This document shows, piece after piece, positions 49,754 to 55,868 of a DNA stretch of 64,000 nucleotides (positions are counted from its first letter, which is position 1; the number at the start of each line of letters is the position of its first letter). The notes below the pieces were generated by a model. It did not search any database and was not told the origin of the DNA. It saw nothing but the letters and a program-made list of their open reading frames with translations. Both the position numbers and the translations under genes were made by a program. Source of the DNA: Trichosphaerium sp. ATCC 40318 (Eukaryota > Protista > Tubulinea). Location: assembly GCA_038496445.1 (NCBI GenBank), contig JALMLS010000440.1:248001-312000 (forward strand). Reading direction: 5' to 3'.

Positions 49754-51140
49754 ATGTACCAAACAGTCGCTCTTTGTTTTTTCGTATTCACAGTAATTAC
49801 AGCAATCCACACCTTTCAAATAGACCCCTTTAATGTAACCTCTTCTACTGTGGCTAGCCCTAATAATCCAAGTACAGTCAATACCGTTTTTGATGTGTCT
49901 ATTGCTGGAGGAAAGCGTGATTTGATGGCAACATTGCTTCAGGGACAAGTTGAAGAGCTAAAACTTCACTGTGACATAGCCTTCAATACTATCATTGAGC
50001 TCTGATTTGACTGTACAAGGAAATTGTACAGTTGTCTATTCTGGAATTGATTTATTAAATCCTCGAATGCCAACGCCAATAAACTTTCTTCAAAATGGAG
50101 CTAGTACGTTGTCATTATATTTTTTCTTTGAATGAAGTATTTACTTTACATGCTAAGGCTGCTTCAACTTTCGTATTATTACAAACGATAATGGAGTAGG
50201 ATTGAGAGGCCAGTTTTGGGATTCACTTTCACCTCATGTCGTCACTCTTTCGCATCAGCTCACCATACCAATTAGTTCTGCTATAGATGTATGTATACCG
50301 TTTGGAAATGAAGCAAGCCTCCTCGCATCAGTAGATAGAGTAGAACTTGCCTTGGAAGGTTCAATACATTTTGATGGGGCAGTACAAAACATGTGCTCTC
50401 AACCGATTGTATCTTGTTGGTATGTACTCAAGAGAAATGATGAGCGATCTAACACCAAAATAGGCATACAATAGTGGCCATTGGCGAAGCAGATCTTCAA
50501 GAATTGAATGTTGGTGATCAAATCACAATACTAGTTGCCTGTAAAAACTACAACTCATTACCAGCAACAACTGAGAATATCATTGCCACTCTCGCTTTTG
50601 ATACATCTATTGCTGTTATCGATTCATCTCAGTACTGTGTTCATCGACTGCAATTTCTAGAATCGCAATTGGAGGTGTTCTTGCTTTTACAGCAACTCTT
50701 GATGAAAACGAAGAAGTATTTTGTACTGCAGTATTTGATTTGGTTGGTCCTGGTCAAGTTGATAATATCGGAGCAGCAATTGTTACAGACGCCAGAGAAG
50801 ATCCTCCAATTCGTTCAAATGAAGGTAGTTCTGTGTATGTAAAATACTATTTGAATGGTCAAGTGATAATACTTACCGTCCATTTTATAGGCAAGGCACA
50901 ACAGCATTCTGTGAGCCACCAACATTATCGTCAATCAACGTGGGAGGTCAAGATCCAACAGTACCTGTTCAAACAAGTTGTCAAAGTCATGCAAGATGCT
51001 TTCGTCTTGTTCAAGAAAATGATTGTATTTTTGCATCCAACTGTGTTGATAATGTATGTGCTGTATTTTGTCATGATAGATTTGAATGTATTTTGGATCC
51101 ATTATGTGCCAACTCCTTTTGGGATCAATCAGACATTTGA
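49754..51140 (+). CDS. Secreted protein copy B1 (two apparent frameshifts near 49990 and 50640; possible pseudogene or consensus error)
   Basis: Same exon structure as the other copies; SIAGGKRDL N-domain; DUF11-like exon; Cys-rich tail ending WDQSDI. Confidence 0.7.
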
Positions 51141-51353
51141 TTTAATAAATCACAAAGCTATTTCACATTGTAGTATGTACTTGTTGATAATATGCTTCAA
51201 TTTTGACAGTCATACCAGTAATAAACCATTAACTATTCATACTCTGTTAATGACTACTCAACAAAGGTAGTTTGAACATTTACAAACAAGTTGAACGATT
51301 TTCATAAAATGATGCACAATTACTTAAAGGATCTTTCACATTTTCTTCAAAAC

Positions 51354-51890
51354 AGATCCTTTTGTTGTCCCTTCTATTGTAACGACCTGACAAGTATCCC
51401 ATTACCTTTCTTGGAATCCCTATCACGTTTTTCTACATCCTTGGCATCACTTGATATCTCCAATCCTTTTGATCAACGACAAATGAATCTCAAGCTATTG
51501 GAAGAGCTTACAGGTACGAACTCAAACATCAAAACCATTAGTCTTTTTTTTTTTTGCCACCAACTTTTGACAATTTATGGTCGTGTGGGACGTTCTTGTG
51601 GCTCGTTTTGTTGTCAAGAATACGTTAGAACATGAGCATGTTTTAAACTACAAGAGGAAGAAAGCAAAAGGTAGAGACAAAGCGTGAATGAAACCAAAAA
51701 ACAACATTTAACTTTTTTCTTGTTATAGATGCTTCTAGCTCACCAAAGAAACAATCAAAGAAATCAAGAGCTGTTCTTGTAAGAACAAGAAGATTTGGTA
51801 CTTTAATGGCAAGTAGTGGTATATTACCATTCAGCATTCAAGGCTTTGTTGGCGGACAAGCAATAATTTTCTTATTGGAAAAAACTAAAT
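51354..51890 (+). pseudogene. Possible LRR (RNI-like) gene fragment
   Basis: STSLASLDISNPF-like LRR segment bounded by splice-like sites. No start codon or coherent continuation was found. Confidence 0.3.
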
Positions 51891-52114
51891 AAAAAACCAA
51901 GATGTAAAAGTTGATTTTTCTTTCGCTTCACGTATCTCGCCTTGCAACTATGATTATTGCCAATCAGATGCTCCCTGTTTCTGATTTCAGGATGACATAA
52001 TATTCTCTCTACAGGTAGTTATTTTTATTTCACCGACCCTACACCTTAGTAACATACAATGTCCTGCTAATTCTGTTTTTATTTTACCTAACTTTGCACA
52101 ATACCTCTTTTTTT

Positions 52115-54009
52115 TCATATCTCATTATCTTCACTCAGTGGGGGCAAGACGTCTTCGTCTTCAGCATTCATGTCAACAACATTCATGTATTTGCTCATGT
52201 CTGGTACACCAGTTCTTGCTTCACGTGATGATAGCACATTTCTTCTAGACGACTTTGTTATTGGTATTCCTGTCCTTACTTCAAATGGTCGTAGTGCATT
52301 ATTCCAACGCGGCATTTTCTTTGTTCGTGGTATTCCTGTCCTTGTTTCTCCGAATTTTGAGGGTTTGTTTTGGTTGTTAGTTTTTTTATGCTGTCTTTGT
52401 AACTCAGCAGCCTCAGCTAATAAGGCATCTTTGTCCTCGATCAATAGCTCATCATCTTCACTCAGTGGGGGCAAGACGTCTTCATCTTCAACATTCATAT
52501 TATCAACATTCATGTATTTGCTCATGATTACTGCCATTATTTCACTCCTTGTTAGTGGTAAACCAGTAAAATTCTTGACAAACTTTGTGTAGGGAATACC
52601 AGTCTCGATTTCAAATGCATTCAATCCAGATAACATATCCTCGATGGGGAACTCAGGCTTTGTTTCAGGAACACCACTCTCAAGTTCAGTGTTGTTCATC
52701 AATGTCAAGTTTGGTTCTTTTCTCCTGCTTCTATTTTTCTTTTGAGGTCGAGATTTCTTTTCTGGCATCATACCACGCATACCCTTTGTGTGAAGTTCGT
52801 TGGGTACTTGCCTATCGGTGCAAACCTAAACAGAATAAAGTCAGAAACGAGAACTCAAAACAACTTTGGCATAACAATTCTAAATTTGTATACCTCATGC
52901 CAAACAGTTATCCTTGGTTTGTTTCCATACTGTATTCTATGATTACCAGGTGGTATGGCTTTATTCGAAGCTTTTTCCGTAGCATAACCACACCACAATA
53001 CAGCGCACATGGGCGGTATGTCAATCCACTCATCATCTTGAGGGTCATGGAGTTGTAAGCCTTTCGTGTTTGACCCTAGGTTTAAAGCAAACAACCCTGG
53101 GTCGTAGTGTGCGATACAATTCATTGGAGGGACTGTGCGCTTCTACAAAAATGAGTAAGATAAAGAGAACGTGGTTTATTGTCATTATTGTAAACAAAGG
53201 TAGACGTACCTCGTTGTTGTAATAGTGAGCGAAATCAAGCATGCCATAGTTTGGTTTTTTTGAGTCGGTTTCGAGCATTGGTAGAGTTACACGCTGGCTT
53301 AACTCCTTTACTGAGCATCCAAATAATGTACTAGATGTTGCTTCCATAATTTGGTGAAGAACATCGTCCATCATTACTGAGAGAGGAGAAAGTGTAGCTT
53401 GTAGTTCCTGAGGGTAAAGAGACTTTTCAATGTAACTGAAAAAAAAAACAAGTCAGTTATTTGTGCGACACAACTGTACTTTTGAACATACCTTCCAGTA
53501 AGAATACGAAAGCTCTCTTTATGTGGAACAGCTAGAACATAGATTTAGTATCTCAAAAAGCCAGTGGATAGAAACAATTGAAAGGAACTTTTTTTGTGGA
53601 TATTTTCACGAAAATAAATTTACGGTTCAAAAAATCAGTGAAATGAACGGCCTGTCTTTGGTTTGTGGATACGTACGGTTATATCCCATTACCGTTGGGT
53701 AGTGGTATGTCTCTTTGTATTTTTTATCCTTGGAAAAGAAGCGTTCTGCAGCTTTCATGCTTTCCTTTGCCATTGTATTCATACGCTTGTTTAACTTAAA
53801 TACAGCCCATCCACGGCGTTTAAGGATCTTGTGGAGTCTATTTATTTCATTTTGATCCTTTTTTAGGACTTTATCTATTTCAATAGCTGGTTCATTTGAC
53901 TACAGGCCATGTTAGTTGTAAAACAACGAATTCAGAGTTTTAACGCTAAACGTAGACGCACCAAACTGCCTCCTTGACCTGAAAATGATGTTGATTGGCT
54001 CGTATTCAT
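52115..54009 (-). CDS. 2-oxoglutarate/Fe(II) oxygenase (IPNS-like fold) with repetitive C-terminal tail
   Basis: RRGWAVFKL...AERFF N-domain; facial triad AHYDPG...GNHRI; GLQL; KPRITVW 2OG-binding Arg; in-frame splice to the 221-aa tail ORF 52115-52780. Confidence 0.85.
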
Positions 54010-54209
54010 GTTATCTAAAACTCAGAATGAAAAAAATAACACTTTAGCTCAGAACAGTATTCACGTAAACGAGCCGGCAACTTTCGCACCAACGCACACG
54101 CCTTTTTTTTTTATTATACTTCTTAGGAGTGATAGACTTTGTGTTGTGGATGTGGTGTTAAAACAATATCACTAGAAGCATTTACAGAATTTATTCCACT
54201 CTACCATAA

Positions 54210-54421
54210 TAGATATGGCAGAAATACCGTATGTACCGATCTCGGGCTGAAACGAAAAAAACGGTTCATAAACGGTTCAAACGGTGCGCTGCCACAAAAA
54301 CCTTAGTGAAAAATTTTAGGTTCACTGAATGAAGAACACAGTCTTGTTCTGCACCGCGGTTCGGACTAAAACCGAAGTCAAATGAAAACGGACCGGTATT
54401 AGACCGGTATTTGCCACTTTA
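54210..54421. mobile_element. hAT-type MITE (212 bp)
   Basis: 8-bp direct repeat TACCATAA at 54202-54209 and 54422-54429. Imperfect terminal inverted repeats tagatatggcagaaataccg / cggtatttgccacttta. Several internal AAACGG and ACCG motifs. Confidence 0.75.
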
Positions 54422-54490
54422 TACCATAATGCTCTGTCAACAAGTACGAACTGCAGAATTCAGTGTAAAAATAACTTGTGATTTATTAAA

Positions 54491-55868
54491 TCAAACGTCT
54501 GATTGATCCCAAAAGGAGTTGGCACACAATGGATCCAAAGTACATTCAAATCTATCATGACAAAATACAGCACATACATTATCGACACAGTTGGATGCAA
54601 AAATACAATCATTTTCTTGAACAAGACGAAAGCATCTTGCATGACTTTGACAACTTGTTTGAACAGGTATTGTTGGATCTTGACCTCCCACATTGATTGA
54701 CGATAATATTGGTGGGTCACAGAATGCTGCTGTGCCTTGCCTATAAAATGAACATTAAGTATTGTCACTTGACCATTCAAATAGCATTTTACGTACACAG
54801 AACTACCTTCATTTGAACGAATTGGAGGATCTTCTCTGGCGTCTGTCACAATTGCTGCTCCGATATTATCAATTTGACCAGGACCAACCATACCTACAAT
54901 GACACTACAAGATACTTCTTCATTTTCATCAAGAGTTGCTGTAAAAGCAAGAACACCTCCAATTGCGATTCTTGACTTTGTGTTTACACACACCAGTGAG
55001 GATGAATCGATAACAGCAATAGATGTATCAAAAGCGAGAGTGGCAATGATATTCTCAGTAGTTGCTGGTAATGAGTTGTAGTTTCGACACGTGACTTGTA
55101 TTTCGATTTTGTCACCCACACTCAATTCTTGAAGATCTATTTCACCAATAGATGATATTGTATGCCTAGTTTGGTGTTAGATCGCTCATCATTTCTCTTG
55201 AGTACATACCAACAAGATACAATCGGTTGAGAGCACATGTTTTGTACAACCACATCACTAGCTATTGAACCTTCCAAGGCAAGTTCTACTCTATCTACAG
55301 ATCCAAGGTGGCTTGCTTCATTCCCAAACGGTATACATACATCTAGCGCAGGACCATTTCTGATTGGTATGGTGAGCTGATGCAAAAGAGTAACGACATG
55401 AGGTGAAAGTGAATCCCAAAACTGGCCTCTCAATCCTAGTCTATTATCGTTTTCAATAATACGAAAGTTGAAGCAGCCTAACCTCTTGTTAATACTTCAT
55501 CCAAAGAAAAAATATAATGACAACGTACTAGCTCCATTTTGAAGAAAGTTTATTGGCGTTGGCATTCGAGGATTTAATAAATCAATACCGGAATAGACAA
55601 CTGTACAATTTCCAAGAGCACCAGTATCAGAGCTCAATGATAGCCCACCGAACAACGTTCTACAGCGAACTTGTACTGCCCCTGACATTGTTGCTATCAA
55701 ATCACGCTTTCCTCCAGCAATAGACGCGTCAAAAATGGAAATGATTGTTTTTGGATTGTCAGTGTTAGCGATTGTATCAGAAGCTACATTAAAGGGATCT
55801 ACTTGAAAGGTGTGGATTGCTGTAATTACTGCGAATATGAAAAAACAAAGAGTGACTGTTTGATACAT
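54491..55868 (-). CDS. Secreted protein copy B2 (apparently intact)
   Basis: Signal peptide MYQTVTLCFFIFAVITAIHT; ORFs 55497-55871, 55137-55433, 54460-55125 and 54491-54691 join through three GT-AG introns. Confidence 0.8.

Follow-up and report, generated by a model that had tools for sequence, protein, structure and literature searches.

Behind the catalytic domain of a 2-oxoglutarate (2OG)-Fe(II) oxygenase from Trichosphaerium sp. ATCC 40318 lies a disordered tail of about 220 residues that carries five intact copies and one truncated copy of a ten-residue motif, E-x-x-[ST]-G-[IVL]-P-x-T-K. The gene occupies 54009..52115 on the minus strand of the window, a term used here for the whole stretch of 64,000 nucleotides analysed (assembly GCA_038496445.1, contig JALMLS010000440.1, positions 248,001 to 312,000; 34-40% GC). 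In the form [FY]-E-x-x-[ST]-G-[IV]-P-x-[ST]-K, borne on a disordered linker of variable length, the same motif is, by sequence comparison, the hallmark of an uncharacterised family of oxygenases from eukaryotes and giant viruses. The reading that we prefer, and to which we give slightly less than an even chance, is that the motif is a tethered, self-docking lid, gate or pseudosubstrate element of the enzyme that has been multiplied in Amoebozoa; it draws on structural models of two homologs.

The gene consists of six exons with 498 codons in all, separated by introns of 56-145 nt that all have GT..AG borders. Exon 1 (53962..54009) begins with the ATG at 54009 and contributes 16 codons, in which a reading of the sequence found no signal peptide. 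Exon 2 (53677..53899) encodes the N-terminal part of the oxygenase and matches positions 16-84 of the family profile (E 2.5e-15), exon 3 (53492..53531) encodes VPHKESFRILTG, a near-invariant strand of the family at profile positions 87-98, and exon 4 (53210..53435) covers positions 101-169 (E 3e-16). The catalytic core is encoded by exon 5 (52894..53142; positions 172-253, E 1e-29), and exon 6 (52115..52825) encodes the end of the catalytic domain (VCTDRQ..., positions 254-332) followed by the disordered tail, with the stop codon at 52117-52115. Exons 2-6 are colinear on the profile. RNA contigs assembled from public runs under the same species label were placed on 51600-54400 and contain five joints, 53899/53962, 53531/53677, 53435/53492, 53142/53210 and 52823/52892 (the last equal to 52825/52894 after the +2 cut note), so that each internal exon has RNA joints on both sides. 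The joints read CT..AC on the plus strand, as expected of GT..AG introns in a minus-strand gene, and they agree exactly with all five predicted introns. One contig spans the joint of exons 1 and 2 and reaches upstream to 54036, and a single contig of 1193 nt runs from 53349 through exons 4 and 5 and all of exon 6 to 52070, which is 45 nt beyond the stop codon and the point where adaptor sequence starts. The tail, on whose transcription the preliminary description of this locus had staked its proposal, is therefore part of the spliced mRNA, one contig being continuous from the catalytic exons through its whole length. Because the RNA contigs show 13 differences to the window, they derive from another strain or allele.

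The oxygenase domain ahead of the tail has the features of an active enzyme. Exon 5 alone scores 31.3 bits against Pfam PF03171 (cut-off 23, E 2.7e-7), and its HYD and the distal His of NHRIQ align to the invariant family columns H176/D178/H232, which form the HxD...H Fe(II) facial triad. The Arg-x-Ser/Thr of the last core strand, whose Arg binds the C5-carboxylate of 2OG, is present as PRITVW, aligned to the invariant R246 column. With triad, 2OG-binding Arg and PF03171 score all in place, the intact catalytic domain assumed at the outset holds good. The window exons were searched one by one, and structures were predicted for homologs instead, which are about 43% identical in the core exon; the double-stranded β-helix core with the N-terminal extension of the isopenicillin N synthase (IPNS)/DOXC type was seen in models of two homologs, P0018 and P0005 (overall pLDDT, the predicted local distance difference test, 91 and 78), to which the window exons are linked by their mapping to the profile. 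Pfam DIOX_N had no match in the window exons, and NCBIfam gave no family match for four homologs. Taken by its sequence, the window protein is an active-looking IPNS-type (PF03171) 2OG-Fe(II) oxygenase from an uncharacterised branch that spans eukaryotes and giant viruses. A search of PDB sequences with the tail returned nothing. The top PDB matches of exon 5 were designed Kelch proteins, discarded as summed noise without a matched stretch, and a sub-threshold Pfam match of the tail to a transposase helix-turn-helix domain (E 0.13) was discarded as well.

All six motif strings and both near-identical acidic segments named in the preliminary description are found in the translation of the last exon, in the order in which they follow the catalytic domain on the minus strand: ELESGVPETK (copy 1, 52658..52687), EIETGIPYTK (copy 2, 52583..52612), the weaker form KNFTGLPLTR (copy 3, 52547..52576), ETRTGIPRTK (copy 4, 52319..52348), EVRTGIPITK (copy 5, 52253..52282) and a sixth copy at 52193..52222. 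This last string is present as described, EARTGVP followed by DMS, but it is not a full copy: DMS belongs to a duplicated segment that begins inside the motif. The pattern [ST]G[IVL]P.[ST][KR] matches five times in the 236-residue tail, whereas 200,000 composition-preserving shuffles never gave more than one match and gave a single one in 64 cases. The acidic segment (MSKYMNV...EDEDVLPPLSED) occurs as a source copy at 52444..52526 and as a second copy at 52117..52199, both on the minus strand, of which the second provides the present C-terminus together with the stop codon. The direct DNA repeat that had been noticed here at about 52127-52199 and 52454-52526 is real and somewhat longer, the actual extent being 83 nt (52117-52199 and 52444-52526) with 92% identity. 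At the start of the tail (52712-52765, minus strand) there is also a basic cluster, PEKKSRPQKKNRSRRKEP, that resembles a nuclear localisation signal and is kept in one paralog (C66) and not in another (C8).

Six-frame searches of the 70-Mb assembly for oxygenase paralogs identified these two genes with tails of the same kind. The C66 sister gene is 98% identical to the window gene in the catalytic exon and 69% over the alignable part of the tail; its tail has eight motif copies, for example EGRTGIPPTK, EDITGIPPTK and EMFTGVPPTK, includes a 34-residue unit that is present twice, and has no counterpart of copy 3. In the C8 paralog, whose catalytic exon is 71% identical to the window's, the tail has five copies (ETRTGIPPTK, EVRTGIPPTK, EIRTGIPPTK, a GVPQTK form and EAKTGIPPSK), of which the final two follow an extra intron; its spacers have no alignable similarity to those of the window gene. 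Comparison with C66 also accounts for the layout of the window tail. The blastn match between the two genes is broken between 52095 and 52202, and the breakpoint falls inside a motif, with EARTGVP|DMSK in the window gene against EARTGVPPTK in C66. From there on C66 has about 400 nt encoding the end of copy six and three further copies, where the window gene has the 83-nt copy of the acidic segment with the stop codon directly after it. Since the break, where the 83-nt copy begins, lies within a motif, the sequences indicate that the two-block layout is the outcome of one recent rearrangement that shortened the tail and has no designed periodicity. The arrangement as two blocks of three motifs, each followed by an acidic segment, is otherwise as first described.

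Within the genome the motif is essentially confined to these three tails. The strict pattern TG[IV]PxTK, searched at the DNA level, has 15 matches in the 70 Mb, 12 of them in the three oxygenase tails, and the reversed-pattern control has five. The other three matches (C3, C58 and C63) fall in open frames that are short or unrelated, do not rise above the reversed control and were set aside. A GIPYTK string downstream of a more distant oxygenase paralog on C37 was likewise rejected as a chance likeness to the family motif, as it is part of a ubiquitin-like exon (…GIPYTKMRLFFEGRII…), which lies at about 1060-1120 of L010 on the minus strand (G000:C37), some 380 nt downstream of the paralog. The distant paralogs on C99/C348 and C37/C27 (L008/L009 and L010/L011) form near-identical pairs on separate contigs, which suggests uncollapsed haplotypes or a recent large-scale duplication in the assembly.

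Outside the assembly, nothing was found at E <= 0.01 when the C66 tail served as query in a word-indexed search of proteins of 178-567 residues. A profile of the motif alone (30 columns, built from 16 motif copies) was run against 1.84 billion cluster representatives, and three proteins passed E 0.001. P0002, from a cDNA-like contig of a soil sample, consists of the C-terminal half of a homologous oxygenase and a tail with GIPPTK, GIPMSK and GIPMTK; P0001 is a tail fragment with five motif copies; P0003 was rejected as a relative, having a different repeat (DEAIPLSKSE) and no oxygenase domain. Further relatives came from word searches seeded with P0002 and P0005, which under-sample the range of the family and the distribution of copy numbers. 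About 35 relatives of 200-460 residues were collected in this way, and nearly all end in a variable linker and one to five copies of [FY]E..[ST]GIP[MPITQ][ST]K, most of them, viral ones included, in a single C-terminal copy. The homolog of Rhizamoeba saxonica has five copies in the form GMPVSK, a homolog from a Paramoeba transcriptome has four, and homologs of Adineta rotifers have the degenerate form YGLASSK; soil metatranscriptomes and a Barrevirus genome bin are among the other sources. The motif thus recurs in paralogs and homologs in variable number, which is the behaviour that the preliminary description had proposed to look for. In an alignment of 31 sequences the E, G, I, P and K of the motif are each retained in 90% of the sequences or more, close to the level of the iron ligands. 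The window tail fits the family definition, E-x-x-x-G-[IVLM]-P-x-[ST]-K beyond a conserved W-[HY]-E-[IV]-C-T...Q, with its five intact copies after VCTDRQ. A full-text literature search for the motif strings returned three papers, all of them unrelated to the family.

Copy number in Amoebozoa stands at five or six in the window gene, eight and five in its paralogs, five in Rhizamoeba and four in Paramoeba, and on these sequences the multiplication of the motif has recurred independently in at least three amoebozoan lineages. One rotifer paralog, P0039 of Adineta steineri (420 aa), has a degenerate motif, EISYGLASSKA, twice, and because of this, change in copy number evidently also occurs outside Amoebozoa. 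A large clade of motif-tailed proteins of 300-350 residues includes P0027, which lies on a 167-kb contig (L021, ENA contig_33776) three genes away from a major capsid gene of nucleocytoplasmic large DNA viruses (NCLDV). Because of this neighbour, the clade is at least partly encoded by giant viruses. The surroundings of P0027 on this contig (8001-16305) comprise a PTH2 peptidyl-tRNA hydrolase, a 1400-residue von Willebrand factor A-ankyrin protein, a second 2OG oxygenase of the P4H type (PF13640) and the NCLDV major capsid gene.

The copies of the motif are conserved against a background of rapid change. Between the window gene and C66 the catalytic exons have a synonymous divergence (dS) of 0.14 and a ratio of non-synonymous to synonymous divergence (dN/dS) of 0.11, and in the tail dN/dS is 0.65 over the initial 86 codons and about 1.0 beyond them. 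When motif copies were compared in 105 pairs, the proportion of synonymous sites that differ (pS) at the seven core positions (E, [ST], G, [IV], P, T and K) was 0.545 and that of non-synonymous sites (pN) 0.062, as against 0.66 and 0.56 for the three variable positions and 0.71 and 0.71 for the flanks. Copy pairs within one gene give the same picture (core pS 0.58 versus pN 0.07; flanks 0.68 versus 0.70), and so does C8 against the other two genes. Since pS far exceeds pN in the core while the two are equal in the flanks, each copy is under purifying selection, and by the same comparison the copies are old, with their surroundings left to drift. The observation of a conserved motif among unconserved spacers is borne out here, both by the equality of pN and pS in the flanks and by the unalignable spacers of C8. 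In the tail, nine of the ten differences between the RNA contigs and the window are non-synonymous and none falls at a core motif position, compared with one non-synonymous difference out of three in the catalytic exons; the tail spacers may even be under diversifying rather than merely relaxed selection.

What the motif might do is suggested by structure prediction. In IPNS, DAOCS and ACC oxidase the C-terminus closes over the active site or enters it. AlphaFold2 was run with the family alignment on two homologs, P0018 (297 residues, one motif copy) and P0005 (432 residues, three copies), the latter being the closest full-length relative of the window protein. In P0018 the core is confident, the linker has a pLDDT of 60-66, and the motif block at 281-290 rises to 91, with a predicted helix at 281-288 capped by the Gly of the motif. 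In P0005 one of the three copies rises (pLDDT 77, predicted helix at 377-385) and the other two stay below 45. Both models have an IPNS/DOXC-type fold and superpose with Z 22-24 and a root-mean-square deviation of about 3 Å over about 240-260 residues on auxin dioxygenase, T7H, DAOCS, ANS, H6H, GA2ox and EFE. With low-confidence stretches trimmed, many of the alignments reach motif residues (297 in P0018, 390-404 in P0005), and they also reach the last residues of the solved chains (DAOCS 307-311, ANS 339-349, H6H 336-345, HSL1 about 350, and T7H). Because the trimmed alignments end at the motif on one side and at the chain ends on the other, the ordered motif copy is predicted to sit where the extreme C-terminal segment of related enzymes lies. 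A two-chain prediction of P0005 residues 1-300 with window tail residues 150-215 scored 0.01; it was made without controls and is counted neither for nor against binding.

The placement in the models, together with a precedent for gating in the subfamily, leads us to read the motif as a C-terminal gate that may have turned into a tethered short linear motif. Ligand binding in enzymes of the IPNS subfamily is accompanied by ordering of the C-terminal helix and of the residues that follow it, which gate the site (PMC13083874). By analogy, one copy at a time of the motif would fold into a short helix and turn and dock back on the catalytic domain, either its own or that of a sister molecule, where related enzymes have the very end of their chain, above the active-site mouth, and once docked it would serve as a lid or pseudosubstrate that gates or completes the site. 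Several equivalent ligands tethered to one chain would compete for a single site, which could keep that site filled for more of the time or let the tail dock in trans on sister or paralogous enzymes. Both the effect of docking and the reason for the multiplication we infer. The preliminary description had offered a repeated docking or autoinhibitory motif as its second choice, and this is the reading we now put first, given that AlphaFold2 orders one copy against the catalytic domain in two homologs.

The family has the HxD...H triad and RxS/T Arg in common with IPNS-type oxygenases with a mobile C-terminus (DAOCS, IPNS, ACC oxidase, anthocyanidin synthase, hyoscyamine 6-hydroxylase, T7H and TraH), and the family motif may be likened, on the strength of the models, to the C-terminal element of such enzymes that orders over the active-site mouth (PMC13083874). 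Sequence identity between motif-tailed proteins and solved IPNS-type members is 13-20%, and the best PDB sequence match is an uncharacterised Shewanella protein (E 1.7e-10). Unlike in those enzymes, a disordered linker, between 10 and more than 100 residues long, here sets the C-terminal element apart from the core, and what is left of the element is a ten-residue motif that can occur up to eight times; we know of no solved or described IPNS-type member with a C-terminal motif that is detached and repeated. Multi-site disordered ligands for one receptor site are known from allovalency (Sic1-Cdc4), and tethered pseudosubstrates are known from kinases. The present tails are similar in that several short motifs in a disordered chain, or a tethered regulatory peptide, face one folded site, with the difference that binding is here predicted; to our knowledge, neither concept has been described for 2OG oxygenases.

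Several observations weigh against a self-docking element. Docking of the motif on the catalytic domain is a prediction, the copy that docks in P0005 is the one aligned to the family column, so that the signal comes from the alignment, and the structural alignments give the first and last aligned residues and no contacts or iron distances. The motif copies of the window gene are the least canonical of the family, with E, Y, R or I after IP instead of P or M, and one of them is truncated. Two relatives, P0036 and P0011, have no motif, and none was found within 1.5 kb downstream of the catalytic exon in the distant paralogs C23, C99/C348 and C37/C27. The number of copies is awkward for a lid, of which one is needed: redundancy of the others would be expected to relax the selection on them, but all copies are conserved, a pattern that fits a substrate or a multivalent ligand of an external partner at least as well.

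The first of these two possibilities is that the motif is a substrate, in cis or in trans, each copy being hydroxylated (on Pro, Lys or Ile) and the modified tail serving as a signal, either as a switch that depends on oxygen or 2OG or as a site of further modification, with no release. The predicted docking place over the active-site mouth is where a peptide substrate would also sit, the repeated independent multiplication in this amoeba, in Rhizamoeba (five copies) and in Paramoeba (four) suits a multi-site substrate, and both the purifying selection on every copy and the confinement of the motif to these enzymes in the genome agree with it. We still regard it as unlikely, for most members, those of giant viruses included, would with their single copy undergo one turnover per molecule, the IPNS-type fold is that of small-molecule enzymes and differs from known protein hydroxylases, and the character of the motif, with its invariant E and K and a G that caps the helix, suggests residues for binding and not a site of hydroxylation. 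That the whole family of Amoebozoa and giant viruses should be self-hydroxylating, with multi-copy tails that report the availability of oxygen or 2OG or feed a peptide product, is an unlikely proposition too; if true, it would make the family a new class of enzyme-substrate fusion among 2OG oxygenases. Alternatively, the motif may be a short linear motif for a conserved eukaryotic partner outside the enzyme, with the self-docking an artefact of the models; in that case the role of the tail would be to localise the enzyme or to serve as its scaffold, and additional copies would add avidity. One candidate is the EB1 end-binding domain, whose ligand is [ST]-x-[IL]-P. TGIP and TGLP fit this core, and basic residues follow several of the copies; the SxIP motifs of microtubule plus-end trackers likewise stand in disordered, partly basic stretches and frequently come in multiples. 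Disordered tails are where multivalent motifs are common, and giant viruses often copy interaction motifs of their hosts. However, what is conserved extends over ten residues and includes an invariant Glu, four residues ahead of the Gly, as well as [ST]-K behind the core, and acidic residues near SxIP weaken EB1 binding. Compared with the SxIP ligand, which calls for a basic, Ser/Pro-rich setting free of nearby acidic residues, the core fits in copies 2-5, but the Glu at -4 is conserved to at least 90%, Val takes the place of Ile or Leu in copies 1 and 6, and copies 1 and 2 lie in acidic surroundings. The strict motif is found above chance in no other protein family of the genome, being limited to one enzyme family, and AlphaFold2 orders it, as a prediction, against the enzyme itself. 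An external partner of this kind is, in our judgement, distinctly improbable.

The idea with which the preliminary description had started, a fusion of enzyme and precursor as in ribosomally synthesised and post-translationally modified peptides, in which the copies would be core peptides that are modified in cis and then cut out as products, gained no positive support, and we consider it hardly credible. Fusions of enzymes with core peptides are known in eukaryotes, namely borosins and BURP-domain cyclases, and like these (the borosins being of the OphMA type) the present gene joins a modifying enzyme and short C-terminal peptide units in one polypeptide, with a conserved unit that is repeated and varies in number among relatives. 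The enzyme classes differ, being an S-adenosylmethionine (SAM) methyltransferase in the one and a copper BURP domain in the other, and the Pfam search found only PF03171. The cores of those systems are modified and released. The present motif is kept throughout a family of oxygenases that otherwise look ordinary, in most members once, and in viral and many cellular members this single copy stands at the very C-terminus. There is no conserved cleavage site beside the motif: the residue after TK varies (K, R, S, P, V or F), as does the length of the spacers, which is 12 to about 80 residues with no alignment possible between them, and 16-18 aligned copies show no conserved column outside the ten residues. 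Exon 1 lacks a signal peptide, the loci of the window gene (C48) and of C66 have no protease or tailoring gene in common, and the long segments of tail between motifs would be wasteful in a precursor. A last account makes the extra copies functionless, the tail being a fast-evolving, low-complexity region in which one needed motif was copied by slippage or unequal exchange. The tail does evolve fast (dN/dS 0.65 to 1.0, with nine of ten strain differences changing the protein), units of it have been duplicated recently (the 34-residue unit found twice in C66 and the 83-nt copy in the window gene), and expression of the window gene has persisted after the loss of three copies and the truncation of another. 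Against this, copies within one gene differ at most synonymous sites and yet keep their seven core residues, none of the nine amino-acid polymorphisms falls at a core position, and multiplication happened independently in three amoebozoan lineages. Functionless copies are thus very unlikely, and a self-docking lid, gate or pseudosubstrate remains the reading that we prefer.

With respect to its genomic setting, the oxygenase gene lies between the arms of an inverted repeat at 50651-51182 and 54449-54980. The C66 locus (G000:C66:243522-246545) has only 51480-54173 of the window in common, a segment of 2.7 kb with the oxygenase gene and a small convergent neighbour at 79-84% nucleotide identity, and it is without the inverted flanks. 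Because this shared segment is all that the two loci have in common and fits almost exactly into the spacer between the inner ends of the arms (51182 and 54449), the gene has the appearance of a passenger carried at the palindrome's centre and not of a member of the inverted gene pairs. Its position at the centre of the inverted locus is therefore as noted earlier, and a link to the locus beyond position does not follow, given that the C66 copy lacks the flanks. The small neighbour is a spliced gene at 51577-51965 on the plus strand that converges on the 3' end of the oxygenase gene; it begins with MVVWDVLVARFVVKNT..., has an RNA joint at 51668/51727 with GT..AG borders, and is kept beside both the window (C48) and the C66 copies.

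2OG oxygenases are among the best-studied enzyme superfamilies, and it is still debated how substrate binding is coupled to oxygen activation by their mobile C-terminal segments. In the present family, from amoebae to giant viruses, a mobile C-terminal element has apparently turned into a free-standing ten-residue motif on a flexible tether. The family would thereby offer a natural system for asking whether a lid works as a tethered ligand, and what multivalency adds to it. Whether the motif is a docking element or a substrate, hundreds of unannotated proteins of protists and viruses would gain a diagnostic signature.

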